Positions 2,261 through 31,156 are shown, counted from the stretch's first letter. The stretch is DNA of 64,000 nucleotides from Monocercomonoides exilis PA203 (GCA_001643675.2 LSRY02000039.1:1-64000), one strand, 5' to 3'. Program-made: numbers and translations. Notes: generated from the sequence alone by a model not told the origin.

Positions 2261-5200
2261 CATGAAGATGTCATCTTTGTGCAGTTGTTGGAGCTTCCAG
2301 CAGGGGTGATGGGGTATCTGAAAAATCTTCTTGTTGCTGGTTCCGTGCAGCAGTCGTCTTTTCGCTCAAGTCCTTTGTCTTTTTTGTCTTCTTCAACTGG
2401 AGCATCACGCCGATCAACTTAACCTTTCAGGAGGTGGAAAAGCGAAGAGGAGAAGGTTGAAGGGCATAAGCCCATCATCATCCTCATTTGTATCTACAGT
2501 TGATCCTTCGGAGGCATCGGCGGTAGCTGTGTTTTACACGTCATTAGCAGCGATGGACAGCATCGAAAGACGGCTGCGGATTGTGATGCCAGAATAACTT
2601 GGGCATATGTTCTGCACATGTCGCTGTCGCTGAAGATGCTGTGGGAACATGCTGTCATGTGGCTTGCTGTGAGGTTCGTGGACATTTTGAACATACGCAA
2701 TGAAAAGCTTTCGGCGATGCTTTTTGTTCCGCTGGTGGCTCCACTTCAGTCGCTTGCAATGTCTGTGGGAAAGAAGTTGGGGAGAAAGCGGATATTATCG
2801 GTGGCAGATATGAATGAGTTATTGTCGATTAACGATCAATTTTTTCCCTTCGCTGAAGATATGGCAATTGCAGTTGTTGAGGTGTGTGGAGTGAAACTGG
2901 ACGATAAAATGACGGGAAGATGTGCAGCAATGTTTGAAAAGGGGAAGAGCTGAAGAACAAGAAGGAAGACTTAAAGAGGATGAAGGCGAATGCGGTGTAG
3001 AAGCTTAGCAAGACGGACGGGAAGTACGAGGGGCATGTTGTAAAGCTGGGGATGGAGAAGGAGGGGCTGGGACGGCAGATCCGGGAGCTGAAGGAGCAGC
3101 ACGAGGAGGTGAAGCAGGAGATGGAAAAGCTGTACTCGGAGTTCCACATGCTGCTGCAGAAGATCCGGGACGATGAGCGTATCTCGAAGCGGACGAGCGG
3201 GCTGTCGGAGCAGTTGCAGGAGAAGTACAAGATCATCCGGATGCTGTAGAGGAAGATTCTGGAGCTGAGTAAGGAGCACAACACAAAGGTGAAGGAAGTG
3301 AAGGAGCAGCTGTTGGTGATGAATGAGAATGTGGAGTTGACTGATGTAGTGATTGAGAAGGTTAAGAAGAAGCAGATGCAGGAGAGTGTGATGGTGAGTG
3401 TGGATGACAAGCGGACCACAGTTGTTTTGGTGGTAACTCTAGCTATGCCTTCTTCGTTGGCCTCAGCGGAAAGAGAGATGATTCTGTTTTCTTCTTCGCA
3501 GATTCTGCCTTCTGGGTTTTGTGAAAACACCCATGAGAAGCTTGAAGCAACCGTCAAAATTGCCGTGTTTCAAAGCTATTACCAAACTTGAACAGGAAGG
3601 TGGTTGCAGTGAAAGTCGGGAGCGGGATGAGTGTTGTGGGAAGAAGACAACGGTGGGGAGGATGAGGTGGAAGTTAAGGAACGAGACCTGGAATCAGAGA
3701 AAGATATGAAAAGAAAGGTTCTGTCGAAAGTGCAGGAAAAGACGATACACATGTAGAAGGCGTTGTTCAATAGATGACTGAGAAGCTGCAGACGGAGTTT
3801 GCGCAATAGAAGTGGGAGCAGAAGAAAATTAATGAGAAACATGAAGAGACAGATGAGTAGCTGACTGAAAAAGCGAAGAAGCTGAAAGAGAAGATGGAAT
3901 GAGGGAACTTTTATGGAAGAAGGAAGGTTCGCAGGAGGAAAATGTTGCAGGTTCAGTGCCTTTGGTGGAGTCCACTCCTATGGGGCTGATGACAAGCACA
4001 GAATTTGAATCGACGGAACATGTGGCGAACGAAACGGCGTATGAGCTTTTAATACCGATCACTTTACAGTCGTTCGTGCAGATGAAGTGTTTGTTGAAGC
4101 CGCAGAAAATAGGGCTGCAGCCGTCGTTGGTGTGGAAGCTGACGTTGATTCTGGGGATATTCGGAGACAAGATCGCAACAGACTTGGGAGAGGGCAGTGC
4201 TGTGTTGGCTAGAGTGGTGGTTCCGAGGCAGTGGTTTTGGGATTTTGTATTCATGTGGCTGAGGGTGAAGCATGCAGCGCAGAAGAAGAGCGAGGCAGCT
4301 ATATTAAGGATGATCTTCGTTGTGAAGCTGTTTCCAAATGACTTTGCGGATGTGTTGTTGCTAGGGAAGTTTGTGCGGGAGGAGAGCAAAGGAGACAAGT
4401 TGTGGTTTTCATGACAACTGCAGAGTGCTATTTGATAGTTTTCAGTTGAAGCCACTTGCAGAAGAGAGCTTGATCTTCCTGATGACTTTGGACAGGATGT
4501 TTCGGAAGTGAATCAATTCAGTGGTTAAAGAGTCTTCGGAGAAGAAAATTGAGATGTTGTTTTTGGGGAGTTTGAGGGATTTTATTCGGAGAAGGGAGAG
4601 GCAGACTCGTCTGTGTTTCTGGGGTGTCTGTTAAATAACACCTGAGCAGAAGAAAAGATGAAAAAAGGTGATAAAGGCGCTGCACGATTCAATATATAGC
4701 TGCGATCCATTGACTTTTTCATCATCATCTTCACACAAAGCTTGGTGAGGGATCATGTATTCGAGGCAGGAGTCTCTTTCGTGTGAGTGCATTCCGCAGA
4801 TACCATACGCGCTGTTGCTGCGGATCTTTCGGGATGTGTACATGTTGTCAAAAGGCCGTTTGCCATCATTTGTTTCGGTGCTAGAGGCGTGTCATCACAA
4901 TTACTTCTTCACACTGTTCCTGAAGAATCAGGATATATTTAATTCCTTCGAAATTTGAGCATATCTGTATCAATCTGAGAAAAGTACGGTAAAGAAGGCA
5001 GTTAGCCTGCATTCTACTCTGTTGAAGATGGCTCTTAATGGCCAGGCGCTGGTGATTTCGAGACATCAACAGGGGCAAGGGCAGGGGCGGTAGTGGAGGT
5101 GGTTCAGAAACGGCAGATGGAGTCAACGCAGTGGGCTATGCGGAAGAAAGAAGGGCAGCTGGCACTGTTGTGGATGGATGGGTTGGTTGTGGAGTTGGCG

Positions 5201-5300
5201 GAACTGCAGATGAAAAGAACGAGGTGGAAAAGGTGATCAGTTTTGGGCTGCTGCTATATGATTGGCAGTGTGTGGAGCTGTGTCACAAGGCAATGGAACG
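2261..5300 (+). pseudogene. GC-richer decayed gene of unknown family with coiled-coil segment (element C cargo 1)
   Basis: Sharp GC rise. Long reading frame broken by stops and frameshifts (…LEHHADQLNLSGGGKAKRR…; MEKEGLGRQIRELKEQHEEVKQEMEK…; SVLEACHHNYFF). Boundaries approximate. Confidence 0.55.
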
Positions 5301-5344
5301 GCAGAGGGAGAGAGGAGGAGTCAATGTATTGTCATGTGTCATCA

Positions 5345-5520
5345 TCTTCCTTTTCCTTCTTCTTTTCTCTCCTTCTCTCCTCCTTCTCCTCCTCCTTCTC
5401 CTTCTCCTTCTCCTTCTTCTCTTCTTTCTTCTCTTCTTTCTTCTCCTTCTTCTTCTCCTTCTTCTTCTCCTTCTTCTTCTCCTTCTTCTCTTCTTCTTCT
5501 TCTTCTTCTTCTTCTTCTTT
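5345..5520 (+). repeat. CTT/CTC pyrimidine microsatellite (mirror ~27888-28066)
   Basis: Directly visible. Unit structure differs between arms. Confidence 0.9.
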
Positions 5521-5937
5521 TATTAATTCTTCCTCTTTTTATTCTCTTTTCCCTTCATTTGAAAAGAAATATGTTCAAAGAAGACAATACGTATCAAGAT
5601 TATTGAAATGCTTGCATCGTACGATAACTACTGTGAAAGAAAATGAAGGTGATAATTAACAGGAAATGGAAGTTGAAAAAAGGATAATTGATGGAATGGA
5701 AGGAAATGCAGGAAAAAAATACAATTTATTTCTCAAAGAATAAGCAAAAATTAGAATCGATATGATTTGAAGAAGAGGAAGAATAAGAAAAAGAAGAAGA
5801 AAACTTATGCGATGAGAATGGCAAAGCCGATGAAAATGTGGATGGAGAAATTAAATGATCTATCTCCAAATGCACACTCAAAGGCTTTTTCACTCGAAAC
5901 CTGTTTGTGTTGTGCTGAAGAAGCAAAAGCAAAAGCA

Positions 5938-6319
5938 GAAGAAGAAGAAGAAGAAGAAGAAGAAGAAGAAGAAGAAGAAGAAGAAGAAGAAGAAGAAGAA
6001 GAAGAAGAAGAAAAAGAAGAAGAAGAAGAAGAAGAAGAAAAAGAAGAAGAAGAAGAAGAAGAAGAAGAAGAAGAAGAGGAAGAGGAAAAGGAAGAGGAAG
6101 AGGAAGAGGAAAAGGAAGAGGAAGAGGAAGAGGAAGAGGAAGAGGAAGAGGAAGAGGAAGAGGAAGAGGAAGAGGAAGAGGAAGAGGAAGAGGAAGAGGA
6201 AGAGGAAGAGGAAGAGGAAGAGGAAGAGGAAGAAGAAGAAGAAGAGGAAGAGGAAGAAGAAGAAGAAGAAGAAGAAGAAGAAGAAGAAGAAGAAGAAGAA
6301 GATGATGATGATGATGATG
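5938..6319 (+). repeat. (GAA)n/(GAAGAG)n/(GAT)n microsatellite (mirror ~27113-27470, 24 bp shorter)
   Basis: Directly visible. The overlapping poly-E ORFs are 186 aa versus 178 aa in the two arms. Confidence 0.95.
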
Positions 6320-6389
6320 AAACATAACAATACATATGCTTTTTCTACATCTTCATCTGTCAATTTATCGCCTTGCGAAATGCATCACA

Positions 6390-8110
6390 CGCTGCCATCC
6401 GCAAGTGGCAGCCCAAATCATATCGAATCTTCCACTTAATTCCAATTCATCTGCAGCCCTTATAGCTCCATTAGCAGTTGTTCTTTCCGGATAAATCCCT
6501 TCATCCTTGTTCCTCCTCATCTGCAGCTCCACAAGCTTCGCCAGCAGACGCACCATTCGGAACATTGCCTACAACACATTTTTTCTTCTCCACCTGCGAT
6601 TTCACAGCATCCACTCTCAGCTTCAGTCCAACCTCAATTTCCCTGTACAACTTCACCTACGATACCTCCGAAAATTTCTTGTGCTCCGTTTCATCAAGCG
6701 CCAAGTCTCTGTCTTATCAAATCGCTCTGAAATCAAACAGCATCTGAAGCACTCTCCGATCAACCACATTGTATTCATCCGGTTGGCTCAAGCGCATCGT
6801 GTAGAAGTTGTAACGATGACTCACATTTCCAGCACCGAATCGAATGATGGAAGAAGGAACACAGACAACTTGAATGCATCTAAATAGTTCCGTAACAACT
6901 GCTCCGGCTGTGTTGGCAGCTTAGACACAGAAAGAAAAGAATCCATTTTATCGTTCACATTGCCTCAACAAGCCCCGCCAAATGACGATGAGAATTTTTC
7001 TGTGATGAAATCGATGGATAGAATCAACATATCACATCAGATTCCATCTTCATCGTCTTTTTCCGATAAGCTGCTCCTCCGCTTCAATTATTCAGTTGTA
7101 ACACTAGAAACATTGTTGCATCTGCGTTTCCATCATCGGGTTCGAAATGCTCTCGTGTGTTGTATCTTATGCAGAAGCATGAAGAACTCTGCACGCCTCT
7201 TCTCTATCTACTTCTTGGTCTTTTTTTGCTAATTTTATTCTTCAACACCTCTCTCCCTCCATATTCTTCTCCCTTTTCTTCTCCCTCTTTGTCTCCCATG
7301 TCTCCTTCCTCTCCTCTGCGCGCTCATCCAGCACCGCCAGCGCAATCACTGCTGGAGACAGAACCACATCCTTCATCCTCAGCCCCATCACATACAGCTT
7401 CTTCTCCACAATCCCCCCCACTTCACACACTGCAATCCCTCGCCCCATCACTTCGTCATCCAGCTTCACCACCACACGCCTCGACTGCGGCGATCGCGAC
7501 ACAAGCCGCGCTATCGCCGACGGAAGCAGCGACGGGTGAAACAGATCGTTGATTAACTGTTACTCATTCAAACTTCCACATCAAATATCCGCTTGCTCCC
7601 CGACTTCGTTCCCACCGACGCTGCAAGAGCATGAAGCTCCACCACCAGCGAAACAGAAAGCATCGCCGAAATCGCCACATCGTACGCACACAACACCTCC
7701 ATACAGCACTCTCCGCCAAGCCACAACATATCCATGCAGCGTCTGTTGCTCCCTCAGTTACAACTTATTTTGATTTTCATACACCCCAGCCACCTCTCGA
7801 TGCAGTCCATATCTCCAGCCGACTTGTTTGACGCCGCCTCCGCCTAGGTATCCGAAGGGTCAATCGCAGGCGCTGATAATAATGGCTGCTCATTCTCTGA
7901 AGATTTCTTCTCTTCGCCCCTACGCCTCCGGAATGGCGAAGTTGATCGGAGTTATGCTCCAGTTAAAGATCTTAAAAAGTTCTGAGAGAAGAGACGACTG
8001 CTATGCTTCCCCGTTCACAAGAAGCTTGATGGGACATATCCCATCACGTCAGCCAGAATTTCAACCAGAAGCAGAAACAGCATCCACTTTCGTATATGAA
8101 TGGTCGACCA
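6390..8110 (-). pseudogene. Decayed paralog of cargo 1 in convergent orientation (element C cargo 2)
   Basis: Minus strand reads ctttaactggagcataactccgatcaacttcgccattccggaggcg, versus 2391+ cttcaactggagcatcacgccgatcaacttaacctttcaggaggtg. Also tttcggcgatgctttctgtttcgctggtgg versus 2709+ tttcggcgatgctttttgttccgctggtgg. Confidence 0.6.
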
Positions 8111-8766
8111 GCTAAGAATACCTGATTTTTTCGTGCAATTTGAAAAGATAGTAGCAGGATATTTTTCCACAATGTATCAATATTAAATGGAAGGGAGAAG
8201 GAAAAGGCACATTCTGAAATGAAAGAAACTTGTTTGATACAAACTGTTTGAATTTAAATATTAGAAGAGATTGCATTTTTGAGTTTGTTGCAAATGGAGA
8301 TTTATTTTGAAAATTCACATATCTAACTTCGATTTTTAACAATAATATTAATAATTGCTCGATGTTAACAGCTTTTAAAATATCTTATAATAACAATGAG
8401 TACAGTATCGATAAAATTTTCTTATTTTATAATTTCTCATAAAAATACTAAAATTAAAGCAAGTTAAAATCTATTTGTCTTTCAACATAGGAAAATATTT
8501 AAAAAGAGGTCTCCATTCGAAAAATCAAAACGTTTATTCGAACAATTGAAATGAAAAGAAAGAAATATGAACAAATTTTTCTGTTGTTTCAAAAAACAAG
8601 AAAAAGAATATTTTTTAACATAAATATGATTAGACAAAGAAAGTGATATATGAAATTTGTTTTATTGAAACGAAATTTTTGGGGATATGTGTGATAAAAC
8701 CAAATAGAAAAAAACAAAGCAATAAATGATGGGAACGGAAAGATCAACATTTTCTGATCATTTGTG

Positions 8767-9637
8767 GGCATAGGTGTATTTAAAGCACATTCCCAATCCT
8801 TGGATATTCTTTAAAACATTGTGATAAATAAAAAGTATATTTAATTATAAAACATTTGTATGGACTGGAATTTTGAAATTCTTTTTGATCCTTGAGAAAA
8901 AACAATTTTTGCAAATCACCCATAAACACTGGTATTTTTCTTATAAAAATGATAAAATAAGATAATTTTAAAATAATAAGCAGCTGTGAGGTCATTTATT
9001 ATTATATACTCTTATTTTATTTATGATTTTTCAAAAAATAAAACATTTTAAAAAATTAATTAAAAAATTTAAATATTTTGATCAATCCCACAATTATATT
9101 TTTAATGTCCAAAAAATTAGAATTTGCTTTCTTTCATCAAGAATTGAACCCTCGTTTGCGAACATACAACAAATCATATATATAAATATAGATTTAAAGT
9201 GTGTGATGAATTATTATCAATATATCATTCAAATCTTTATGAATTTTGTTTATGATTTTTAAGATGAAAATTTTTGTGCAGTTTGAGGATGATTATATTA
9301 CGCAATGATGATCATGAATAAAGAAGCTTTGTTGATGCCATGAAAGTGTGAATTTCATATAAATTAACTTATTTAAAGAATGTTTTAACGATTTTCATTA
9401 TTTTTTTTATTTATTTTTTTACTGAATCAATGTTGAATGTTAAATGCAAGAAGATATTTACAGAAGCAACAACTACTGCACAAATATGAAAGATGGAATG
9501 CGTTTTGCAGCAAATAAAAGAGGGTTTCTTGATTTCGCATTTGTGGGGATGAAATCCAATGCAAATACAGCAAAAGTGGGAAACGATATTTTCATTGAAT
9601 GTTACAACATCACATGCAATATTAACATGTGCAGAAT
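8767..9637 (+). repeat. Left TIR of element B (871 bp)
   Basis: Reverse complement of 17281-18151. Mirrored ORFs have a constant coordinate sum of 26918 (no indels). Confidence 0.95.
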
Positions 9638-12370
9638 TTCAATTTGATCTTCGAGAGCGATATTTCACTCGTAATAACGCAATATATGGTAGAGATGAAT
9701 GTGATTATCAAAAAAGATACAGATCTGATTGGATTTGTAACTATTCACCAGAGCGATACGATTATTGTGAGCAGCGTGAATGGATCAAACGAAAAACAGT
9801 GTGGAACCAACACACTTCCATGTTATTCGATTGAGCATGGACTAATGCATTTGACTTCAGATTTCATGAGTCAAATGATTGTTGTTGAAGAGAGTGCGAT
9901 TGGCTATGAGATAAATATGAGGGAAATGAGTTTGAGCTCAAAAAGAAAGGTTGAATGCAAAGTTGAAATGAAATCTGAAATTGAAAGAACAAAGGATTCT
10001 GTAATATCAACAACAGGAGAAGTTTCATTGCTGAGAGTGTATTTTGTGTTTGATTCGAATTTTATCTCTTCTCACGAATCAGTGATCTCACCAGAAGGAG
10101 GGATTCTTGAAATTATGAATTGCTCATTCACATCAACACAAATGATGCAAGGAGAATATGTTGTATTTGCAAACGTTCCATTTCACATCATTAATACAGC
10201 AGAAGGAGAATTACAAGTTGATGGATGCACAATATCAAATCTTGTACTTCATGAATCAGCATTGTATCTTTCATCGCCACTTCCATCGGTCATTGATTCA
10301 TTAACAATTTGCAATTCAACAATAGAAACTTCTCTGATGGATAAAAATGAATGTGGGCAATTTACACTTATAAATTTCAACACAGAAAATCTCACAGTTG
10401 AGGGAAATGAAGAATCACTTATATCTTGCTTGACAATGAAAAAGACGATGCAATTGACAAATTGCACAATTGGTGGAGTTAGTTCAAAGATTACAAAAGG
10501 GAAATTGATGAAAGTGGAGGATTGCACAGATGTGAAAATGGATAATTGAATATTTGATGGAAGCGTAAAGGAAAGAAATGAGAAGAATTTGAATGAAGGG
10601 GAAGAGATGTGCAGATGGTCAGGATCTCTTGTGGATGTTGTGAAGAGTTCTATGGTAATGAAAGTTTCAACAATCACAAATTCACCAGAAGGCGGAATAA
10701 CAATGAAAGGAGGAAATGTGATTATTGAGAAAGGAGAGTTCATTGACAACAATCCATCAATTGAAGTATATCCTTCTTTGAGAAGAAACATCATTTGTTC
10801 AGATTCCGGAACATTGAATGTGATGTGTTTGAAGGGAGGAGATGGATTGAAGGATAACACATCTCTTTGGATTTTGAATGAAGGGTGCAGTTTTGAAGGT
10901 ATTGTTTCAGAAAGGGATTCATCATTCTTCATTCCAGAGTTGGAAATAGTCGAAATGGAAGAGATGGGAGCAGAACTTCTTCTGAGGTTCAAGGGAAAGC
11001 TGTTGCTTCCATGCAACATATCGTTCAAGATTGTGAAACAAGTTGGTGATGAAGATGTTGTGGAAAGATATGAATTCAATGAAGAAGTACATGTTTCCGA
11101 AAATGAAGTGGATGGAAAAGTCCCCATTGAGACAATAAACAATGCAGGAGAAGAGACAGAAGTGAGTGTGAGTCTTCTGTTTGGAAAGAAAGAATCTCCT
11201 TCATCGATTGATTCATTTGTTCTGAAGAACAGAAGTGAAACAAAAGAAAAGGGAGATGACAGAATTGTCGAGGGAAGAAAAGAAGGAAAATCTTATTGGT
11301 TGTTGATCGTGATTGTGCTTGTTGTTCTTCTTTTGATTATTCTCATCATTGCAGTTGCATTTATTGTTCGATGGAGGAAAGTGAAGAATGAAGCAGAAGA
11401 TCTGAGAGAGATTGTGAATGACAACATCAGAAAAGATCCGAAGGCATTTGAGATGGTGACAATGGAGATGTCGCCTGAGGAGCAGTGGAGGAGAGCGGAG
11501 AGAGAAGCGGAGAAGAAGAACGATGAGAGGATGAAAAAGAGGGTGTATGTGAAAAGCTTGGGACATTCAGAATCATCAGAGCATTTGTTGAGTGAGAGTG
11601 ACTCCACTGAATACATCTTGGGAAAAGACTCAGATAAGATCCCTGATTGGGCATTAGAAAAGGAGGAGGAAGAAGAACTCAGGAAGAGAACGCCATCACC
11701 ATCCATTTCATCCACTTCAACCACAGATTCAGAATCAACTTTTGTTCGAGGGGAGGATTTGTGTCCCACTACCTCATCGATGTCGAATCTGGTGGATGCC
11801 ATGGCGTGCTCATCCCCTCATGAGAAGCTGATTGTGGATCTGAGGGATTCACTGTTCATGCTGCTTCATGGAAGGAATAAGACAAAAGAGATGCCAATTG
11901 GTTCATTGAAGGAAAGAGAACAAACAGCTGCCCAGATCCTGTTCTGGGTAGCTAATCTCGCCCTTCATTCATTTGATGAAATGGACAATCCTCTTCAGTC
12001 ACTTGCCAATCTCAGTCCTCACATTGTTCTGTTCTCCGAACACATGGTGATTTGTATTGTGATGCATTCTGACTTATTATCAGATGATGATTCAGACTCG
12101 TCATCTATCACATCATCAACCGTCGTGACATCTGCAACTGATGATGATGAAAGTGACTCCCTTCCTTCATCAGCGTTTGAGGATGAAGATAGCTTCAAAA
12201 AAGAGTGCTTGAGATGGAAGGCACCGGAACTGTTGATCAATAAGAAGATGGAAGCAACGAAGAAGACAGTGGTGTTTTCGATAGGGATGATGCTGTGGGA
12301 GTGCCTGACGCTGGAGATCCCGTTCGGGGAGTTTGAAGTGAAAATTATGGCTGAAAGCATGATTGTGTGA
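9500..12370 (+). pseudogene. Captured 3' portion of a giant surface receptor/pseudokinase family gene (end of ectodomain, TM, cytoplasmic tail)
   Basis: GNDIFIECYNI, NAIYGRD, QCGTNTLPC, LKGGDGLKDNTSLWIL, TM WLLIVIVLVVLLLIILIIAVAFIV, DPKAFEMVTMEMSPE, RWKAPE, FSIGMMLWECLTL are all collinear with 44250-47100. Frameshifts and a TGA at 10547-10549; no 5' end. Confidence 0.88.
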
Positions 12371-13055
12371 GGAGAGAGTGTGGTGGTGGAGTTGAGAAAG
12401 ATGTGGAAACTACACACCGAATGAGGAAGTGAGTGACATGATGATGGATGTGAATCTGGTGTTATTCAAGAGCATTCAATCGGACACAATTCTTTTGATG
12501 ATGATTCGCGATAATAGTTATCACAGAGACTTAAAGCGAGAATGCATTACTCGAGTATTTTCAAATGCATCGAGTGCGGATGGAAAAATGGAGAGATGAA
12601 AAAGTTCTTTCCAAACAATTCTTTAGGAGAAAGACCAGAATGATAATGCGAAACAAAAGAAAATATGATTCTAATGTATATTTATATGTTTGGAAAAAAT
12701 GAGAATGCAGTGATGAGAAAACAATTGAAACAAAACGAAACAGAAAACAAATTCAAACTTTTTAATAAATGAACGAAATTATCACACATGATTAATCTTT
12801 TGAAATTATGCATTCATTATTTTTATAAGAAAAAACAAAGCTGTGATTATATTTGTTTTTGATTATTTATTTGAGTTTTTTTTGTATATTGATTATGAAA
12901 AAAATTATGCAAATTATTCAAAAAAAATATATGTTTTTTATGTCAAAAAGAAGTTAAAAATCAAATTCCAAATGTGTGTTTTTTTTTAAATTTTCCATTA
13001 TAAATATCATAATTTTTAAATTTTTGATCATCTGCAGAACAATTATATCAAATAC

Positions 13056-14558
13056 ATGAGTGAATACGACTTATTGGAAAAAGAATAAACTTTCAACGAG
13101 TTTATAATTCAATCAAACAACAAAAATCATCTTGCAGTTGAATTGCTATCTAAATACGGATTGATAAAAAGAAATAGGAAATGTTGGAAATGCGACAGAA
13201 CGATGGAGCTGAAACTGTACAAAAAAGAAATTGATTACTATGCATACAGATGTTCAAAATGTGGAAGAATTTTCAGTTGGAGTTATGATTCGATATTCAT
13301 GGAATTTCGCTTATCACCTTTGAAAATTGCATCTCTATTATATCATTTTTGGTACAAGCATTCAATAAAGGAAGTTTCTTTCGAGTTGAATGTTACAAAC
13401 AAAACTGTTGTGAAATTTAATGAAAAGATGAGAAGAACATGCTGCTTTTTTTGAAACGAGCAAAATGGAAAAAGTCGGAGACAATCGCATAGTTGAAATA
13501 GATGAAACTTTGATTCACAAAAGAAAAAATGGAGTTGGGAGATGCAAAGAACAGCAGTGGTTATGGGGTGTTATCGAAAGAAAGGAAAAAGGAAAGCCTC
13601 AAAAACTAATTGTTGAATTTCTTCCTGATAGAAAAGCAGACACAATTTTATATTTCGTTAAAAAAAACATTGAAAGATCAGCAACTATCATGTCTGATAA
13701 ATGGTCAGCTTACAATTGCATCAGTGAAAATGGTTTTACAATAGACAGCGTTAATCATACTCTTTATTTTGTTAAACCAGAAAATCCAAAGGTTTACACA
13801 CAGACAATTGAAGGTATCTGGTCTCATTTGAAAAATCATATTCCAAAACGAGGGAGAACATATATGAAAACTAAGGAATATGTTTACGAGTTTCAATTTA
13901 GATATAATAATCGACTCACTCCAATCTCATTCATGAAAGAATTATCAAAAATTGACAAGAGAAGTTTGGATGTTTTTTTACGTGCCTACGACGAAAGTGC
14001 TTCAAATATGATAAGCGTTTTGAATAAAGAAAGAAAATTCAAATTATCATCTTACTATTTGAAAAAACAGGAAATGAAAAAAAGAAGAAACTATGAAATG
14101 GCTGATGAAAGTGAGCTGGATGAAGTATTGAAAAAAAAAGATTATCAAAGAAATTGATTGAAACAAATATAACAGAGAATTTCATAAGAAGAAAAATTGA
14201 AGATGAAGAAGAGAAAGAAGAGAAAGAAGAAAAAGAAGAAAAAAAAGAAAAAGAAGAAAAAGAAGAGAAAGAAGAGAAAGAAGAAACTATCTCAGATTTA
14301 GAAACAAAGACTGTAAGAAAAAAAAGAAATATTAGAAACAGATCAAAAAATGGTAGATTTGTGAAATTTATTGAGAATCAACAGATTGAAACTTTGATTC
14401 TTGAATCAAAAATGTTTTGTGAAAAAAAGAAAACAAAAATTGAGGAGATGGAGAAAAAAGAAAAAGAAAAGAAACATGAAATTGAAAATAAGCCAATACT
14501 CAGAAGCTTCATCAAATCAAAAGACATAGGAACGGAGCAATCTCCTATTAATTTGTAG
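13056..14558 (+). pseudogene. Merlin/IS1595-family transposase of element B (one early TAA, two homopolymer frameshifts), long charged C-terminal tail
   Basis: CWKC..YRCSKC; IVEIDETLIHKRK; WLWGVIER; IMSDKWSAY; VNHTLYFVKP; YTQTIEGIW; YVYEFQFRYN. Frameshifts at T7 (13446-13452) and A9 (14131-14139). TAA at 13086-13088. Confidence 0.9.
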
Positions 14559-15189
14559 ACAAATTCATCACTACACTTTATTTCACATCACATTTTTATA
14601 ATTTCGAAATAAACTTATTCAAGAAACAAATGATGATTCTTTTTTTGTTGCTTGCACTTTCTAGACATGAGAAAAGATTCTTAACAAATTGTTGGAATTG
14701 TATTTATTGAACTGAAATTCATTCATTCTATTTGAATATCTATATTACAATAACTCTCAGATTGAATACAATCACTCAACCACAATTTTCTCATTATCAA
14801 ACATAAAGAAAAGCTGTTATTACAGAAAAGAATTGGAGGATCAAATTCTTTCCAAAACAAACATTATCTCAATATTAACTGTTTTTTTGTTTAACCTTTT
14901 TATCATCCTCCACAAACTTCACTCTTCCTTTTTCTTTTCCGATCCTTTTTACCTGTATCCACATCACTCTCCAACTCCACACACTTCCTCAAACAACCCA
15001 GATAGATATTCCACAACTTCCATGCACTGTTCCTTTCACAAACACAACTCAAATCAGTTCTCCTTTAAACATTGTTCTTTGATATTCCTCTCCTGAAACT
15101 GTTTTAATTTCTCAAACTTCCACACACATACACATTCATTTTATTTTTTCATTCACAGATCAACATCATCCATTAGCACTTGCACTTCT

Positions 15190-16330
15190 CAACTAAGTTT
15201 TCTTTTCTCCACTCAGCTCAATCTCCATTACTCCCCCTTCTCTGTTCCTCTCACTTGTGATACCATCCGTCTCCAAGCTCTCCACAACCACACTCGAATG
15301 CACAGAAAATGGCACATTCTCAAACGATGCTCCACTGACAGAACAGTTCTGCACATTCAGCATCCACTTCAGCGTGCTCACAATCCTGTATCCAACAACC
15401 CCGCTCTCTCTCCACTCAAACCCCACATTCGACACATTCACCACCCAGCTTTCTGATCCCAGAACATGCTTTACCCAGTTCCAAACACCTGTGGAAGACT
15501 TATCACTAACATCCTCACACCCAGGCGCTCACCACTCCACATCACAGCTTCACATCCATCACTCTTCAGCTCCCATTCAACATGCATCTTCGCCTGCTTT
15601 GCTTCTTCTGCCTCAGGCCCACATATCATTGTTCCTCGCCCAAACACAAAGCAGTCACTCGCCACACATCTGTCGCTCACCACAACCTTCTGCTCTTTTT
15701 GCTCACTCTCTTCCTTCAGATGCCCAATCCCACACCAAAGCGTGCCACATGCAATCTCCTCTTCCCCACACCCCAGAACATCCATCCCGCTCCCTTCCGA
15801 CACATGCACCTCATCTCCGCTGAACTTCACCAGAAACAGAAGCAAATCAACACTCTCCCTTGCAAATCTTCCATTGTCCCTCCCTCGCATATCCACTTTG
15901 CACATTCTATCTTCATCCACAAGCTCTATCTCAAACCATTTCGGAAGGATTGTTTCCTTAAAATCCTCACACATCACATACACATCTTTCCTTTCACCTG
16001 CCCTAATCCTCTCGAGCACACATTCATTCACCCCAAAGCAATCTGCCCTGCTCTTCCCATCAGCACTTATGAAAATCTCTCCTCCTTTTTCTTCACTCCC
16101 CCTTACCGAGCATCCTTCAAATGTGCAGTTCTCAACAACAACCACTAGGCCTTCTGCAACCTCACGCTTCAATGCCCCTCCATTCACATATTCACTTATA
16201 CACATTGAAAATATCGAATCGATTCCCACTTTGCATCTATTCCCTCGCTTCTCATCAACAGCGTTCCAGAATTCCTTCTCTCATCTGTCAATCCTTCTCC
16301 AACTTATCTCTATCTTTGATCGTTTCTCTT
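15190..16330 (-). pseudogene. Captured internal ectodomain fragment of the giant receptor family
   Basis: NGGALK..KGGEIFI..KDVYVMCEDF..VDLLLFL..GMDVLGCGEEEIAC aligns with DGGFLH..RGGGIFL..NDVFLSCVDL..IDLSFLL..GFDILGCGTEEYPC of the 35284 gene (about aa 2230-2590). Confidence 0.78.
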
Positions 16331-16617
16331 CAACAATCACTCATTTCTTTTCCCTCAGTACCCCTCCTGCATAAAACATGATTACTTTCATAATAACACT
16401 ATCCATTTGTGTTTCTCTGCCTTTCACTCTCCTAACCCACGCATAAACCACCAAAGATCCACTTCCTTCCTCGCTTTCTTCTTTTTCATATTTGGTAGTT
16501 AACAAATTTCACTTCCCAAAAATTCAATTCTTTATTCTTTTTCTTCTCTGATTCACTATGTTGCTTCACAAAAAGAGTTTTCGTTGCGTTTGTATCTTCA
16601 TATTTTCTTCCTTCGCA

Positions 16618-17190
16618 TTAATAACTTTTGAATATTTTTCCACAATGCTCCACTTCAAATCCACTTGATGAGATAAATATCACAATTAAGCAGTGTGGTA
16701 CGATGAATATGAAAAATTCTTTGTTTGAATGATGACTATCACTTCCAACAAACAAATAATTATCACCTTTCATTGATGAATAATCAAACTTTAATGTATC
16801 GTTTGTCACAGAAGAATTAAAATTCTTTCCCTTAATGAACACATTCTTTCCAATGGCTGCATTATTATTCTCAAAAATTACTCCAACATCAAAAAGAAAT
16901 GGCTTCTCAATCAAACAATTTTGACAATCCAAATACAGGAATCCTCCTTTTCCATTGTTTAATGAAAGCGAACAAAATGAAGCATTAGTTGAATTAATGA
17001 TCAAATCTTCATTCCCTTTCAATATCACTTTTGCAACGCCTCCTTCATCGCTTCCAGTGTTCACAATATTAGAAAAGTTGTTGCTCTCATATAAATCAGA
17101 GAAAGCTATCACCAATAGTAATTTGACAAATGCTGGCCCTATAAAACTTCCCACTTGCAACATGTAACTTCCACCGGATGTTGTTCTCAA
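16618..17190 (-). pseudogene. Second captured ectodomain fragment of the giant receptor family
   Basis: NGKGGFLYLDC..PFLF..FENNNAAIGKNVFI..LKFDY..FVGSD..SSGFEVEHCG aligns with NGRGGAVFINC..PFIF..FEENNAFTGKNAFI..FAFDY..FTGSD..SAGCDVKRCG (about aa 2575-2715). Confidence 0.8.
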
Positions 17191-17280
17191 TGTATGTTGA
17201 ATAATATGCTTTGATATTTGAACATCAAATATGTATTAAATTAGTTGAAAATGTTTATATGATGAACTCAAGGAATTTTG

Positions 17281-18151
17281 ATTCTGCACATGTTAATATT
17301 GCATGTGATGTTGTAACATTCAATGAAAATATCGTTTCCCACTTTTGCTGTATTTGCATTGGATTTCATCCCCACAAATGCGAAATCAAGAAACCCTCTT
17401 TTATTTGCTGCAAAACGCATTCCATCTTTCATATTTGTGCAGTAGTTGTTGCTTCTGTAAATATCTTCTTGCATTTAACATTCAACATTGATTCAGTAAA
17501 AAAATAAATAAAAAAAATAATGAAAATCGTTAAAACATTCTTTAAATAAGTTAATTTATATGAAATTCACACTTTCATGGCATCAACAAAGCTTCTTTAT
17601 TCATGATCATCATTGCGTAATATAATCATCCTCAAACTGCACAAAAATTTTCATCTTAAAAATCATAAACAAAATTCATAAAGATTTGAATGATATATTG
17701 ATAATAATTCATCACACACTTTAAATCTATATTTATATATATGATTTGTTGTATGTTCGCAAACGAGGGTTCAATTCTTGATGAAAGAAAGCAAATTCTA
17801 ATTTTTTGGACATTAAAAATATAATTGTGGGATTGATCAAAATATTTAAATTTTTTAATTAATTTTTTAAAATGTTTTATTTTTTGAAAAATCATAAATA
17901 AAATAAGAGTATATAATAATAAATGACCTCACAGCTGCTTATTATTTTAAAATTATCTTATTTTATCATTTTTATAAGAAAAATACCAGTGTTTATGGGT
18001 GATTTGCAAAAATTGTTTTTTCTCAAGGATCAAAAAGAATTTCAAAATTCCAGTCCATACAAATGTTTTATAATTAAATATACTTTTTATTTATCACAAT
18101 GTTTTAAAGAATATCCAAGGATTGGGAATGTGCTTTAAATACACCTATGCC
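17281..18151 (-). repeat. Right TIR of element B (871 bp)
   Basis: Reverse complement of 8767-9637. Confidence 0.95.
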
Positions 18152-18211
18152 CATTTGTGATCTGATTTTCAGATCAATTAATATTTTGTGACTTTTCAAA
18201 AAAAAAATACC

Positions 18212-18426
18212 CATCTGAAAAAAATTTTTTTTGAATATTTTCAAAATTTAAAATATAAGAAAAGGAGGAAAATGATTTGTTCGAAATTGATAAAGAAGAA
18301 TATTTGGTTGAAATGGAAAAGGAAAAAAATGATGAAGAAACTGAAATTGAAAATGAAGATACAATCAAAATCGGAAATAATCATATCGGTTTTTACACAA
18401 CTTTTTGTGACTATATCCGATTGTGA
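18212..18426 (+). pseudogene. Probable displaced 3' end (acidic tail) of the 690-1534 transposase
   Basis: Removing element C joins ...RDKELTS to sequence encoding EKEENDLFEIDKEEYLVEMEKEKNDEETEIENEDTIK...IRL* (frame shifts at the poly-T/A runs). The transposase in element B also has an acidic tail. Confidence 0.55.
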
Positions 18427-18681
18427 TAATATACGACGCTGTTTAACACGGAAAAATAAAAAAATTAATTTTTGAAATAATTTATTTTGAGTCGATTTTT
18501 TTATTTTTGGATATTCCATACAAATACACATTTTTCACTTGTGAAAATATTCTTTATCATTAATATGCATTATTAATACTTATTTGAGCTCATTTTAGAA
18601 AAATCAAAAAATTGAGTTTTTTGATCAAAAAGTCGTTTTACAATGAAAAAAGAACCTTTAATAAACAAAATGCGATTATAT

Positions 18682-18937
18682 GGGTGATTTTTTTTAAAAC
18701 ATAACTTTTTTCGAGATGTTGTTTTTTCAAAGGATGTATGACATTGAAAATTCCTGTTGAAATCATATGCAAAAACGATTTCATATTATTAGAAAATTAT
18801 TGATTTTTCTTTAATACAGATGAAGACATTGAAAACAGATCTTTTCACTTTCGTGTGTGAAAAAATTTGAATTCAAGTGCATTTTTTTGATCGGAATTTT
18901 AAAACACATAAATTTGACTTCAAAAATAATCACACAC
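18682..18937. mobile_element. Decayed 256-bp GGG-ended MITE (mirror ~23887-24143), same family as 33833-34088
   Basis: atat|gggtgatttttttt...ttcaaaaataatcacacac|atat, with end-to-end similarity to the 33833 copy. Confidence 0.65.
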
Positions 18938-19739
18938 ATATATTTTGTATTGCGATCAAATGAGATGGAAAATGAATAAAAAACTGGACTAAAATGTCGG
19001 TGCATGGTTAAATGAGATTATTACCGATTGTGATTGAATTCGATGCGATTATATCAGGTTTTAACTGAATCTTTATTATTGAGTTTGATTATTATCCAAA
19101 TGATTAAATATAGATTGTGTATGAAATACCGGACAAAAATAAAAAATAAGGTTTGATCAAAAAGTCACTTATCAAAATAATTGCACGCACATGCACAAAC
19201 GATTGGAAAAAAGAGCTGAAATTGTTGAGATTCTGGAAAGTGAAAAAATGGCGAGATATAATCTAGTTGACAGACGAGTTGAGCAAAAATTCAAATAGTA
19301 AATGAAAAGCTCACTATTTCTAATTATTTTAAAATTATTATTATTTGGCGAAACTTCGTCTGTCATGTTCAGTTTTAAAAATGTTAAAAATAAAAAAATA
19401 ATGGATGTGATCATCAATTTTATATTTATATTTCCGTATCTCTTTGTATAGCTTACAATAATTAATGAACTCTGCTGTCTGTATGTTAATTTTTGTTGGT
19501 TATTTGTTTTTATCAATCTTTATTAAAAATATTTTATTTTTAGTTGCTTAATTTCGATCGTTCACTTAATCACTTTCACTTTTGCTCGAAACAAAAAGGT
19601 GAAGAAATTGGCATCACGGAAGTGTGATAACTTATTGAATATTATTAATTTTTATTCATTTTGAAATCTAAATACTCGATATGACGTTTTTTTTTATTTA
19701 AAAAACGATATTTTTAACTTTAGTGTTGCGCTGTATTTA

Positions 19740-20583
19740 AGATGATACCGAATTTTGAACAAACGAAAGAGTTAATCGAAGAAACGCATTAAGAAGAATT
19801 AATTCCTGTTTTTTACAGAAGAATTGTTCGACAAAATGCACAAAATGTTTGACGAAAGAAAATTACGTTGGAGAAAGCTGCTGATTGCTGAAGGACATGG
19901 GATATTACAAAGTGTTGAAAATGACTTTATTATATTCTTTTGATGAATCTTTTTTGAGAGATCGATTTCAGAAAATGATCATTGAAGAAGAAGAGAGAAA
20001 AAAAGATGAAAAGAATGAAAATCTTCTTGTTGGACTTTGTGAATGCTTTCTTTTGCTTCATGAGGATATTTCAAGAGAATTTGCTTCAATATGTGTCCGT
20101 TGCCTTCTGAAAGTTGCAGCGAAGAAAGAGGAAAGCGAGGAAACACAAAAAGAAGTGGAAATGGCATTGTTGACTTTGATCAATACTTTCCGTTACGTTT
20201 GAAATTTTCTATTTTCTTTTGATTTTTTTTAATTTTTATTTTAATTTTTTATCAGCCAATCAAAAAGGAACTGTATTTGAGTGAAATTATAGAAATTATA
20301 AAGCGTCATCAAGAATTCAACAATCTGACACGACTTGCTTGTCATTCTGCTTGGGTATTTTTAATAAACCGAGTTTACAGTGACAAAAGTTTGGAAAACG
20401 TGATTGCGGATAAGCTACATTTTGCGAGAGATGCGACAAGAGAATAGTAAGAGCTGATAAAATGCATAAATTGGAAGAATAAAGATGGATAGGAAAAAGG
20501 AGGAAAAGAATGAAGCAATAGAAGCAGCTGAAATGATGAAGGAAGCAGCAGAAGTGGCTGAAATGATGAAGGAAGCAGCAGAA
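19740..20583 (+). pseudogene. Fragment of a multicopy uncharacterised Monocercomonoides-type protein family, with intron ~20197-20255
   Basis: RFQKMIIEEE..NENLLVGLCECFLLL..SICVRCLLKVAAKKEESEETQKEVEMALL. After a GT..AG intron it continues PIKKELYLSEIIEIIKRHQEFNNLTRLACHSAW..LHFARDATRE followed by two stops. Family recognised from memory, not by search. Confidence 0.7.
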
Positions 20584-20908
20584 ATAGAAGGATAAATTAG
20601 GATTGTTAAGAAATTGAATTAGTATATATTAGAAATTGGAACTATTAATTAATGTTTTATTATTCGTTGAATAAATACTTTCAAACATTTTTTATTGAAA
20701 TTATGAAAAATGAGGATAGAAGAAATAAAATGTTATTTATGTTTATATTTTTGATATATCTTTTTGTTGATTTTTTTTATTGTAAGTTTTTAATGAAAGC
20801 TTTATTAATTATTGAAAATGAACTTCTAAGTTTTCACATCTTAGTATATTTTTTTATCAGTGGAATGAAAAAAATTTGAAAAAATAATTGAGACAAAATA
20901 TTCATTTT

Positions 20909-21796
20909 TTAATAATCAAAATTTTCAAAAATGTGTAAAAACTTAATGAATGAGTTACAAGGGCTTCTTTTAAATGTGAAAACATTTAAATAATCTTGCA
21001 TATATTTTTGTCTAACTCCGTATGGAGGAAGATATTTTCTGAGAAGGCTCCAAGTGCTTTCTATTCTTTGTGTGTGAGCCTTTGTAATAGGATCCACAAA
21101 TCTTTTTTTGTGATTGACAGTAAAATGCGTGTATCCAGCTCCATTTAAATTGTTATATCCCCTCCAACAATCCGTGTATATTTTTGTTTTTTCCTTCACA
21201 TAACTTTTGATTGCTTGATGCAGTATTTCTCTTGATCTTTTCAAAACAGGAATTAAAAACAGATTGGATTTTTGACCCTTTTTTTTCGGACGTTCGATTC
21301 CTCCAATGATCCAATTTTGTCTTTTAGTTCTTCCTCGATTGTATTTTCTTTTAGGAAATATTGCTTCATCAATTTCCACTTCAGTTCCTTTTCCTCCAAT
21401 AATTCGCTGATTTTCCATGTAAAATTTTGATACACATTTACGAAAAGAATCATAAGCATGCATCACAGTAATATTTGATTTTCCACAAATGAAACTACAA
21501 TGTGTCTGAGAAATGCCGACCCAAAAACATAAAGCCATCAAACAGATATTACAAATTTTGAATCTGAATTTTTCAAAATTTGTATTTTTCGAAATTTTGA
21601 TTTGTTTATGTTTGCAACGAAAGCGACTTGTTTCATTTTCATAAACGTAGATTTTCATATTCTTTTGGCACTTCCAGCAATAGCGGTCTTTTTCCAAGAT
21701 CTTATGATTTAAAAGCCAATCAATTGTTTCTTTTTCTGATCTGAATATTTGAAACAGTTTTTTAAACTGCTTTTGATTTTCTGCTTTGGTTGGCAT
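20909..21796 (-). CDS. Merlin/IS1595(ISXO2)-family DDE transposase, intact, 295 aa
   Basis: N-terminal Zn ribbon (CWKC...RCKH), GGKGTEVEIDE (D1), KRKYNRGR, WIIGGIER, IYTDCWRGY (D2), HFTVNHKKRFVDP, HTQRIESTW (E), YLNVF. No stops or frameshifts. Confidence 0.95.
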   Translation of the reverse strand: MPTKAENQKQFKKLFQIFRSEKETIDWLLNHKILEKDRYCWKCQKNMKIYVYENETSRFRCKHKQIKISKNTNFEKFRFKICNICLMALCFWVGISQTHCSFICGKSNITVMHAYDSFRKCVSKFYMENQRIIGGKGTEVEIDEAIFPKRKYNRGRTKRQNWIIGGIERPKKKGQKSNLFLIPVLKRSREILHQAIKSYVKEKTKIYTDCWRGYNNLNGAGYTHFTVNHKKRFVDPITKAHTQRIESTWSLLRKYLPPYGVRQKYMQDYLNVFTFKRSPCNSFIKFLHIFENFDY

Positions 21797-22241
21797 AATA
21801 TTTCAAATAGAGTGTCTGAAAAAAGATTTATTGAATTATTCAAGTTTTGATCTTCATATGTGAAAAAATAGAAATAAAAAGACAGATAAGTGAAGTGAAA
21901 TCAACAAATAGAATACTGAAGGCACTTCGAAATAAAACAAAAAAAAATTGCGAAAAATTTAAAATCTCAAGATCAAATAAAGATTTAAAAAATATTTGGA
22001 ATCGAATTTCAAAAATAATTAATAAATTATGCTCTGCAAAGATCAACAAACAATTTGCAAAATATTACACATTCAAAGTTCAACTTTGGTTCAAAAACAC
22101 TTATACAACCGAAATTTCAAAAAACATTTGACATTCAATATAATAAGCAAATAATTTCGTCGATACCAATATTTCTTACATTTTCGAAATAATTTTCATT
22201 GATCCTTCTAATTCTTTCGCTTCCATTTTCTTCTCAGCCAC

Positions 22242-23085
22242 TTCTGCTGCTTCCTTCATCATTTCAGCCACTTCTGCTGCTTCCTTCATCATTTCAGCTG
22301 CTTCTATTGCTTCATTCTTTTCCTCCTTTTTCCTATCCATCTTTATTCTTCCAATTTATGCATTTTATCAGCTCTTACTATTCTCTTGTCGCATCTCTCG
22401 CAAAATGTAGCTTATCCGCAATCACGTTTTCCAAACTTTTGTCACTGTAAACTCGGTTTATTAAAAATACCCAAGCAGAATGACAAGCAAGTCGTGTCAG
22501 ATTGTTGAATTCTTGATGACGCTTTATAATTTCTATAATTTCACTCAAATACAGTTCCTTTTTGATTGGCTGATAAAAAATTAAAATAAAAATTAAAAAA
22601 AATCAAAAGAAAATAGAAAATTTCAAACGTAACGGAAAGTATTGATCAAAGTCAACAATGCCATTTCCACTTCTTTTTGTGTTTCCTCGCTTTCCTCTTT
22701 CTTCGCTGCAACTTTCAGAAGGCAACGGACACATATTGAAGCAAATTCTCTTGAAATATCCTCATGAAGCAAAAGAAAGCATTCACAAAGTCCAACAAGA
22801 AGATTTTCATTCTTTTCATCTTTTTTTCTCTCTTCTTCTTCAATGATCATTTTCTGAAATCGATCTCTCAAAAAGATTCATCAAAAGAATATAATAAAGT
22901 CATTTTCAACACTTTGTAATATCCCATGTCCTTCAGCAATCAGCAGCTTTCTCCAACGTAATTTTCTTTCGTCAAACATTTTGTGCATTTTGTCGAACAA
23001 TTCTTCTGTAAAAAACAGGAATTAATTCTTCTTAATGCGTTTCTTCGATTAACTCTTTCGTTTGTTCAAAATTCGGTATCATCTT
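22242..23085 (-). pseudogene. Mirror copy of the 19740-20583 host-gene fragment
   Basis: ORF 22623-22871 is identical to part of 19885-20202. Confidence 0.7.
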
Positions 23086-25321
23086 AAATACAGCGCAACA
23101 CTAAAGTTAAAAATATCGTTTTTTAAATAAAAAAAAACGTCATATCGAGTATTTAGATTTCAAAATGAATAAAAATTAATAATATTCAATAAGTTATCAC
23201 ACTTCCGTGATGCCAATTTCTTCACCTTTTTGTTTCGAGCAAAAGTGAAAGTGATTAAGTGAACGATCGAAATTAAGCAACTAAAAATAAAATATTTTTA
23301 ATAAAGATTGATAAAAACAAATAACCAACAAAAATTAACATACAGACAGCAGAGTTCATTAATTATTGTAAGCTATACAAAGAGATACGGAAATATAAAT
23401 ATAAAATTGATGATCACATCCATTATTTTTTTATTTTTAACATTTTTAAAACTGAACATGACAGACGAAGTTTCGCCAAATAATAATAATTTTAAAATAA
23501 TTAGAAATAGTGAGCTTTTCATTTACTATTTGAATTTTTGCTCAACTCGTCTGTCAACTAGATTATATCTCGCCATTTTTTCACTTTCCAGAATCTCAAC
23601 AATTTCAGCTCTTTTTTCCAATCGTTTGTGCATGTGCGTGCAATTATTTTGATAAGTGACTTTTTGATCAAACCTTATTTTTTATTTTTGTCCGGTATTT
23701 CATACACAATCTATATTTAATCATTTGGATAATAATCAAACTCAATAATAAAGATTCAGTTAAAACCTGATATAATCGCATCGAATTCAATCACAATCGG
23801 TAATAATCTCATTTAACCATGCACCGACATTTTAGTCCAGTTTTTTATTCATTTTCCATCTCATTTGATCGCAATACAAAATATATGTGTGTGATTATTT
23901 TTGAAGTCAAATTTATGTGTTTTAAAATTCCGATCAAAAAAATGCACTTGAATTCAAATTTTTTTCACACACGAAAGTGAAAAGATCTGTTTTCAATGTC
24001 TTCATCTGTATTAAAGAAAAATCAATAATTTTCTAATAATATGAAATCGTTTTTGCATATGATTTCAACAGGAATTTTCAATGTCATACATCCTTTGAAA
24101 AAACAACATCTCGAAAAAAGTTATGTTTTAAAAAAAATCACCCATATAATCGCATTTTGTTTATTAAAGGTTCTTTTTTCATTGTAAAACGACTTTTTGA
24201 TCAAAAAACTCAATTTTTTGATTTTTCTAAAATGAGCTCAAATAAGTATTAATAATGCATATTAATGATAAAGAATATTTTCACAAGTGAAAAATGTGTA
24301 TTTGTATGGAATATCCAAAAATAAAAAAATCGACTCAAAATAAATTATTTCAAAAATTAATTTTTTTATTTTTCCGTGTTAAACAGCGTCGTATATTATC
24401 ACAATCGGATATAGTCACAAAAAGTTGTGTAAAAACCGATATGATTATTTCCGATTTTGATTGTATCTTCATTTTCAATTTCAGTTTCTTCATCATTTTT
24501 TTCCTTTTCCATTTCAACCAAATATTCTTCTTTATCAATTTCGAACAAATCATTTTCCTCCTTTTCTTATATTTTAAATTTTGAAAATATTCAAAAAAAA
24601 TTTTTTTCAGATGGGTATTTTTTTTTTGAAAAGTCACAAAATATTAATTGATCTGAAAATCAGATCACAAATGATCAGAAAATGTTGATCTTTCCGTTCC
24701 CATCATTTATTGCTTTGTTTTTTTCTATTTGGTTTTATCACACATATCCCCAAAAATTTCGTTTCAATAAAACAAATTTCATATATCACTTTCTTTGTCT
24801 AATCATATTTATGTTAAAAAATATTCTTTTTCTTGTTTTTTGAAACAACAGAAAAATTTGTTCATATTTCTTTCTTTTCATTTCAATTGTTCGAATAAAC
24901 GTTTTGATTTTTCGAATGGAGACCTCTTTTTAAATATTTTCCTATGTTGAAAGACAAATAGATTTTAACTTGCTTTAATTTTAGTATTTTTATGAGAAAT
25001 TATAAAATAAGAAAATTTTATCGATACTGTACTCATTGTTATTATAAGATATTTTAAAAGCTGTTAACATCGAGCAATTATTAATATTATTGTTAAAAAT
25101 CGAAGTTAGATATGTGAATTTTCAAAATAAATCTCCATTTGCAACAAACTCAAAAATGCAATCTCTTCTAATATTTAAATTCAAACAGTTTGTATCAAAC
25201 AAGTTTCTTTCATTTCAGAATGTGCCTTTTCCTTCTCCCTTCCATTTAATATTGATACATTGTGGAAAAATATCCTGCTACTATCTTTTCAAATTGCACG
25301 AAAAAATCAGGTATTCTTAGC

Positions 25322-31100: not shown

Positions 31101-31156
31101 TACCCCATCACCCCTGCTGGAAGCTCCAACAACTGCACAAAGATGACATCTTCATG
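28115..31156 (-). pseudogene. Mirror copy of element C cargo 1
   Basis: Reverse complement of 2261-5300. Confidence 0.55.

Follow-up and report, generated by a model that had tools for sequence, protein, structure and literature searches.

A Merlin transposon of Monocercomonoides exilis with coding terminal inverted repeats and a receptor-kinase cargo that has probably been exchanged with host paralogues

Introduction

Monocercomonoides exilis is a gut commensal flagellate, and we describe here element B, a transposon of the Merlin superfamily that lies near the start of contig C35 of strain PA203 (LSRY02000039.1) and carries pieces of receptor-kinase genes. The analysed stretch, called the window below, is the first 64 kb of this contig (64,000 nt). 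Merlin is a poorly studied superfamily. A survey of Merlin elements in the M. exilis genome reports more than 100 copies in seven families, several of them potentially active, with 8-bp target duplications (PMC8101967); it gives terminal inverted repeats (TIRs) 23-29 bp long, the inner borders of which are unclear, and does not mention cargo (PMC8101967). Host gene fragments mobilised between TIRs are known from the Pack-MULE and Pack-TYPE elements of plants, and coding fragments inside TIRs from Turmoil-1 of Caenorhabditis elegans. In open-access full texts we found no published account of a Merlin with host-gene cargo, gene capture or transduplication.

According to the genome papers, the tyrosine-kinase-like (TKL) family is the largest gene family of M. 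exilis and overlaps unclassified repeats; in the assembly, "unclassified repeat" that overlaps protein tyrosine kinases accounts for about 35% (PMC8767320). The PA203 assembly (82,301,135 bp in 101 contigs) was made with Canu from Oxford Nanopore Technologies (ONT) reads with a read N50 of 8.9 kb, and was polished with Nanopolish and Pilon (PMC8767320). Below, contig names such as C1, C6 and C7 also label the element copies found on these contigs, and L-numbers denote the loci fetched. The data obtained make it quite probable that B belongs to a Merlin family whose ancestor captured part of a TKL gene and whose cargo was later exchanged with paralogues in the host genome.

Results

Element B occupies positions 8767-18151 of the window (9,385 bp). 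It begins with GGCATAGGTG at 8767, closes with CACCTATGCC at 18151, and is flanked by an exact 8-bp target duplication, CATTTGTG, at 8759-8766 and 18152-18159; given the local base composition, such an 8-mer match is expected by chance with a probability of ~3e-5. The arms of the TIR are identical over exactly 871 bp, the first mismatch being at element position 872, and stay ~99% alike out to 878 bp (8767-9644 on the plus strand vs 17274-18151 on the minus strand). The outer part of the left TIR, ~655 bp (8767-9421, plus strand), is element-specific and non-coding; the inner ~220 bp (9422-9644, plus strand) are receptor coding sequence, the homology to host genes beginning within 9422-9507.

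B is located in the left arm of a large palindrome (1-20775 vs 33399-22038), and its empty target site is found in the other arm. In-silico removal of B together with one copy of CATTTGTG yields a sequence that matches the right arm on the reverse strand (23966-25365), the match being exact at 30, 100, 300 and 700 bp per side (1,400 bp in all). The single 8-mer of the empty site lies at 24666-24673 (minus strand), between flanks identical to those of B. As judged from the assembled sequence, B is confirmed as a real Merlin transposon that appears to have inserted recently. The termini, the exact duplication, the empty site and the 871-bp TIRs had all been reported in an earlier sequence-only reading of the window, and each of them was found where it had been placed; the same reading had B inserted recently, moving ~4.5 kb of receptor-gene sequence, and this too holds: B inserted as one unit, and the total now stands at ~4.8 kb. 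We also considered B as a composite of two solo elements around host DNA, and rejected this, as other copies flanked by duplications are colinear with B over its entire 9.4 kb.

The palindrome could be a real fold-back duplication via the TIRs of a second Merlin at its centre, element A, or an assembly path across the perfect repeats of A. According to the latter possibility, B-filled and B-empty versions of the locus (alleles or isomers) were falsely joined across the 1.33-kb repeats of A, such that the empty site would be allelic or sub-clonal, and the B junctions or the sister arm could be artefactual. This is suggested by the start of contig C35 inside the left arm, by the lack of any arm substitutions over ~11 kb (with B removed, the arms are free of them between ~800 and ~20590, their differences being confined to simple-repeat indels), and by the length of the outer left arm (1-8766, the mirror of 24674-33399, beginning at base 1 of C35), which at 8.8 kb is close to the read N50 of the assembly. 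However, a misjoin would not give a precise 8-bp duplication plus an exact empty site, so that the B insertion stands either way, and a fold-back chimeric read would not give a 1.26-kb asymmetric centre with a transposase gene. Moreover, there is a second case of palindromic flanks, around the copy C16, 1.0 Mb inside a 1.4-Mb contig. We therefore consider a false palindrome possible but doubtful. Since the same flanking sequence occurs both filled by B and empty, the conclusion that B inserted recently holds whichever origin of the palindrome is right; if the palindrome is an assembly effect, the empty site would be an allele rather than a paralogous copy.

The Merlin transposase of B is encoded in two frames at 13143-14157 (plus strand), comprising a putative zinc-finger part (13143-13454) and a DDE part (13465-14157). 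The open reading frame (ORF) 13465-14157 matches DDE_Tnp_IS1595 (PF12762) with E=3.6e-20 and 73 bits vs a cut-off of 27. The ORF 13143-13454 holds two CxxC pairs; its matches to Pfam zinc ribbons are weak (E=0.018-0.09) and all below the cut-offs. The two frames are split by an extra T in a T-run at ~13446-13452 (T7 in B, T6 in C76), and in C76 the transposase is one intact ORF of 366 aa that matches PF12762 at E=5.4e-20; it is intact in C20 as well. In the alignment with other Merlin proteins neither D149 nor D214 varies; B and C76 both have the E of the TIEG-W motif, which is found in eight of the nine aligned sequences. The closest database relatives are eukaryotic PF12762 proteins of 27-47% identity, two ladybird proteins among them; among independent contigs, no record encoding the 230-aa transposase ORF of B was found. 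Just past the transposase there is a Glu/Lys-rich low-complexity ORF (14154-14558), and B is here ~90 bp shorter than C76 and C20.

The ends of the element are also those of a Merlin. Both ends of B and of most copies carry GGCATAGGTG, thus providing the GG start of the TIR, and the 8- or 9-bp target duplication typical of the superfamily is represented by a perfect 8 bp at B, C76, C91, C6, C1 and C7. The assignment of B to Merlin/IS1595 in the sequence-only reading is borne out by the IS1595-type DDE domain, the conserved D, D and E, the GG termini and the 8-bp duplication. At 871 bp, the TIRs of B lie outside the range of 24-462 bp given for Merlin in the survey, a range that is descriptive and not defining (PMC8101967); those of its close relatives measure 370-871 bp. 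In two copies the TIRs are far longer, 2.7 kb in C80 and 3.75 kb in C7.

A genome search with the TIR of B gave ~300 candidate matches, among the best 40 of which, once scored, ten further paired copies were found and fetched. Paired ends elsewhere in the genome, which the sequence-only reading had named as the test of its proposal, are thus present, and at five of the ten copies they are accompanied by perfect 8-bp duplications: C76 (92963-102443, 9,481 bp; GTTGCAAC), the full-length copies C91 (CTCTTCTT) and C6 (AGCAAAAC), the 2.6-kb deletion derivative C1 (CATCTATT), and C7 (9,831 bp; ATGAAAAA), where the arms of the 3.75-kb TIRs are 99.4% identical. No target duplication was seen at C20 (99983-109466), C64, C17 and C80, nor at the full-length C16 (1002264-1013083), the flanks of which are mutually inverted, being perfect reverse complements of each other for at least 785 bp. 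Each C16 flank contains another Merlin transposase copy, at mirrored distances, and the site is 1.0 Mb into its contig.

C76 and C20 are identical across 9.48 kb save five 1-bp indels, and their flanks share no homology, which excludes one locus assembled twice. Such identity in unrelated surroundings points to very recent mobility, and C76 and C20 are candidates for a currently active master element. Two identical copies with an intact transposase, together with a filled and an empty site bearing identical flanks, suggest that the family may be active at present.

The receptor-derived tracts of B (9422-12377 on the plus strand, 15648-16214 and 16638-17496 on the minus strand) total ~4.8 kb and belong to the TKL family, the corresponding MONOS_ proteins carrying PF07714. 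The left segment (9422-12377) represents the 3' ~2.95 kb of a TKL receptor-kinase gene and spans the end of the ectodomain, the membrane span and the kinase-like tail, with the natural stop at 12368-12370; its first ~220 bp fall within the TIR. The segment is broken by an in-frame TGA (10547-10549) and by a frame change near 9620-9690. It is colinear with six fetched host loci (L043-L048) at 73-81% DNA identity (blastn), and shows 60% identity over 625 aa with the C-terminal ORF of an intact neighbour gene at 35284-47405 (tblastn). The right tracts (15648-17496, minus strand; tblastn, and blastn against L043-L048), read inward from the right end, consist of a piece mirroring 9422-9610 (17496-17308), a piece whose counterpart is ~780 bp further upstream in host genes (17307-16638), and a further ectodomain-repeat piece (16214-15648).

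A new point is that the history of this cargo differs from that of the element carrying it. The backbone (the outer TIR and 12400-15950) gives a tree-like series of identities to B, namely 98% for C76, 95% for C91, 89% for C16 and 85% for C64 and C6. In the left receptor tract, every pair of elements is 75-80% alike, and even B and C76 share ~78%. In the right receptor tract these two are 92% identical overall, with patches of 89-92% within a background of 97-100%. Low-identity stretches between B and C76 occur only in receptor-derived sequence, and on its right side the diverged block stops where receptor homology does, at ~12377; within the receptor tract, an island at 9647-9860 is still 97-99% identical. 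This pattern is consistent with the receptor-homologous sequence having been overwritten after B and C76 had split, and not with a swapping of backbones.

The cargo is not monophyletic, and no element copy comes as close to that of B as the host locus L047 does (80.9%). The cargo of B is also a mosaic, in which 9800-10030 matches a subfamily of contigs C2 and C35 at 94%, 10170-10470 is 90-93% identical to the locus L045, 10967-11480 is 94% identical to a subfamily clustered on contig C8, and 11750-12100 is 93-94% identical to loci of contig C52, the remaining loci in these windows being 55-87% alike. The differences from the best match are clustered and separated by perfect runs of up to 87 bp. 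The PHI test for recombination on ten sequences is strongly positive: 0.545 was observed, the mean of the permutations being 0.595 (z=-11.8), and not one of the 300 permutations fell as low. The ratio of non-synonymous to synonymous divergence (dN/dS), 0.2-0.3, and the synonymous divergence (dS), 0.6-0.8, are alike for element-element, element-host and host-host pairs, and the dS of the cargo far exceeds the divergence of the backbone.

Alternatively, the receptor-like ORF might be a selected, working gene of the element, for instance a truncated receptor-kinase expressed from the TIR, such that old cargo lineages would have persisted while the backbones were homogenised or recombined. In C91, C6 and C64, intact open frames reach 977, 1,215 and 1,075 codons, respectively, despite backbone differences of 5-15%, and these ORFs are annotated as the genes MONOS_16470, MONOS_9330 and MONOS_15353; dN/dS between element-borne copies is ~0.2, and no near-identical host donors were found among the candidates scored. 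On the other hand, the copies in B and C76 carry stops and frame changes, and by eye no signal peptide is seen at the N-terminus of the ORFs of C91, C6 and C64. A working gene is likewise hard to reconcile with a cargo that is nearer to L047 than to its element-borne counterparts, with separate windows of B matching separate host subfamilies, with a diverged block that ends where receptor homology ends, and with the near-identical B/C76 island inside the receptor tract. We regard this alternative as quite improbable, and the later exchange of cargo with host paralogues remains our preferred explanation.

Relatives of all degrees share the cargo. The alignment of B with C76 and C20 spans the entire element, and that with C91, C16, C64 and C6 spans most of B. 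It also aligns with C7 and C80, whose backbones are ~70-75% identical and which hold the whole receptor piece in both arms. The C-terminal part of the receptor is present in every copy (tblastn), and the 3' segment in all full-length relatives. The junction between the outer TIR and the receptor sequence is common to B, C76, C20, C91 and C7, the backbone of the latter being ~72% identical; in C64, C6, C17 and C80 the alignment to B resumes further inside the receptor tract, not at this junction. Since cargo and junction are shared across relatives, they point to a single capture well before B existed. Most likely, there was one ancestral capture, and B would have carried its receptor cargo without acquiring it. 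That the other copies are assembly duplicates of B is excluded by their different flanks and by a divergence of 2-30%. The description of B as gene-capturing in its own recent event, as the sequence-only reading had it, draws on receptor fragments lying between perfect TIRs in a young insertion, but it is not upheld, as the same arrangement occurs in all full-length relatives and C7, which shares the junction, itself has a target duplication, so that a recent capture by B must be considered extremely improbable.

As for the surroundings of B, element A is a second, unrelated Merlin of ~4.3 kb in the palindrome centre (approximately 19251-23574, minus strand), with ~1.33-kb TIRs and a 295-aa transposase ORF at 20909-21796 (PF12762, E=2.1e-19). 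Its left border is marked by a GG start at 19251, and other copies match from position 1078-1092 of the query 18160-22040; the palindrome extends past the ends of A. A Pfam search with the two largest ORFs of the palindrome arm (2829-3557 and 3829-4455) found no family. Each arm also contains an older pair of inverted repeats with ~61% identity (1585-2961 vs 7398-8766), and B is inserted in the right member of the pair, so B looks like an insertion within a decayed older element.

The neighbour receptor gene consists of two overlapping ORFs in different frames, 35284-45255 and 45237-47405. An A6 run is located just upstream of the overlap (45215-45255), and the in-frame stop of B (10547-10549) is found at the homologous place; the split of the neighbour gene may reflect a frameshift, an error in a homopolymer or unusual splicing. 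Three metatranscriptome runs ("synthetic metagenome") contain 5-6% of the words sampled from 7800-10800, which could mean that part of the TIR or of the cargo, or a close paralogue, is transcribed.

Discussion

In this work, we propose the following history of the B family. Long ago, the family would have taken up, once, the 3' part of a TKL receptor-kinase gene, oriented from inside the TIR inward, and all full-length descendants would have kept it, some of them holding the receptor piece in both arms as TIRs of 2.7-3.75 kb. Since then, the receptor tracts would have been repeatedly overwritten from ~1,000 genomic paralogues, most probably in short tracts, by ectopic gene conversion or by template switching during double-strand-break repair. 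According to this model, the coding sequence would have been shaped in functional host genes and then copied into the element-borne tracts, thereby allowing the cargo to evolve apart from the element backbone; the dN/dS and dS values of the cargo and the long open frames of C91, C6 and C64 are in keeping with such a coding history. B itself presumably moved by cut-and-paste, leaving the 8-bp target duplication, and was mobilised either by its own transposase or by that of the intact, 98%-related C76 and C20, which have the same termini. Of this history, the sequences show the insertion, the family, the common cargo, its separation from the backbone and its mosaic make-up; the conversion mechanism, its direction and the transposase that mobilised B are inferred.

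Several points weigh against this explanation. Firstly, backbones that differ by 2% would lead one to expect a donor at ~98% after a simple recent conversion from a surviving donor, and this expectation is not borne out: among the best 40 matches scored, there was no donor above 83% for the whole left cargo of B, nor above 81% for that of C76, and when four sub-windows were searched as short windows, none exceeded 94% among the best 40 scored. The gap could be explained by short tracts taken from many donors, by fast donor turnover or by donors missing from the assembly. The mosaic analysis drew on six host loci plus identity tables from genome searches, in which the best 40 of ~200-1,200 candidates were scored each time, so that the copy numbers are lower bounds. 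The direction of transfer, from host to element, is deduced from these comparisons.

Secondly, the points concerning B itself should be considered. The B junctions and the 100%-identical palindrome arms are known solely as assembled sequence. Among the copies compared, B has no near-identical sibling; this fits cut-and-paste movement, and as a consequence the word "recent" depends on the identity of the TIR arms, which intra-element conversion could also maintain. The extra T in the transposase of B may be either a real frameshift or an ONT homopolymer error, and the autonomy of B hangs on it.

The sequence-only reading had further suggested that Merlins may shuffle surface-protein modules in this genome. 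Half of this idea stands, as host-family sequence has evidently flowed into the element copies; the reverse donation was not seen, for we came across neither a host gene that had received cargo from an element nor a new chimeric gene. One may speculate further that Merlins actively diversify and spread the largest surface-receptor family, carrying receptor 3' modules to new loci, exchanging sequence with host paralogues in both directions, and seeding some of the "genes" and "unclassified repeats" that account for one third of the assembly, with some element-borne truncated receptor-kinases being expressed and selected. We offer this as a tentative and rather unlikely extension of the model.

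For the annotation of M. exilis the consequences are more immediate. The cargo ORFs of the elements C91, C64, C6, C7 and C17 are annotated as ordinary genes (MONOS_16470, MONOS_9330, MONOS_15353, MONOS_17342 and MONOS_12354), and the 587-aa ORF of B (10607-12370) is also found in a public protein collection. At least five MONOS_ genes are thus transposon cargo, and counts of the "largest gene family" include mobile copies. Part of the repeat fraction of M. exilis thereby gains a mechanistic explanation. To what is described for the Merlin superfamily, the present family adds three features: its TIRs, 0.37-3.75 kb long, include coding sequence; an element of the autonomous type carries a transduplicated segment of a host gene; and the history of the cargo is decoupled from that of the element, apparently through exchange with a paralogous family of ~1,000 members.

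Among the closest known systems are the Merlin families F1-F7 of the same genome (PLoS One 2021, PMC8101967), with which the B family has in common the DDE_Tnp_IS1595 transposase and the 8-bp duplications. As far as the text description of these families allows a comparison, B and its relatives differ in having TIRs of 370 bp to 3.75 kb with receptor coding sequence, and receptor-gene tracts in every full-length copy, whereas no host-gene cargo is reported there (PMC8101967). The bacterial IS1595/IS1016 elements share a related DDE domain, the 8-bp duplication and, putatively, an N-terminal zinc finger, as judged from the description in the same survey (PMC8101967), but are ~1 kb long with short TIRs and normally without a passenger, and the best homologues of the B transposase are eukaryotic.

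Turmoil-1 of C. elegans (Biol Direct 2008, PMC2572040) is similar in that coding fragments have been transduplicated into the TIRs of a DNA transposon; both element and host are different, the genes concerned are rsp-2 and cpg-3, and there is no report of its cargo being replaced from a large family of paralogues. The Pack-MULE and Pack-TYPE elements of plants (PMC8903248, PMC5861414) likewise carry host gene fragments between TIRs and co-mobilise them, the fragments being mostly non-functional and their parental gene family recognisable. Just as in Pack-type elements, host gene fragments are found in B inside a duplication-flanked insertion with an empty site, and the parental family of the cargo is clear; a single parental locus was not found among the candidates scored, the best of which reach 83% overall and 94% locally. 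In contrast to Pack elements, which have no transposase gene, a transposase is encoded here, intact in C76 and C20 and frameshifted in B. The Pack elements, non-autonomous members of Mutator, CACTA and other plant superfamilies, have acquired fragments of many different genes via separate captures, whereas here we see an autonomous-type Merlin in which one ancestral capture from a single gene family was most probably followed by the replacement of its content by paralogues. In other words, the B family is new in its long coding TIRs and its exchangeable host-gene cargo.

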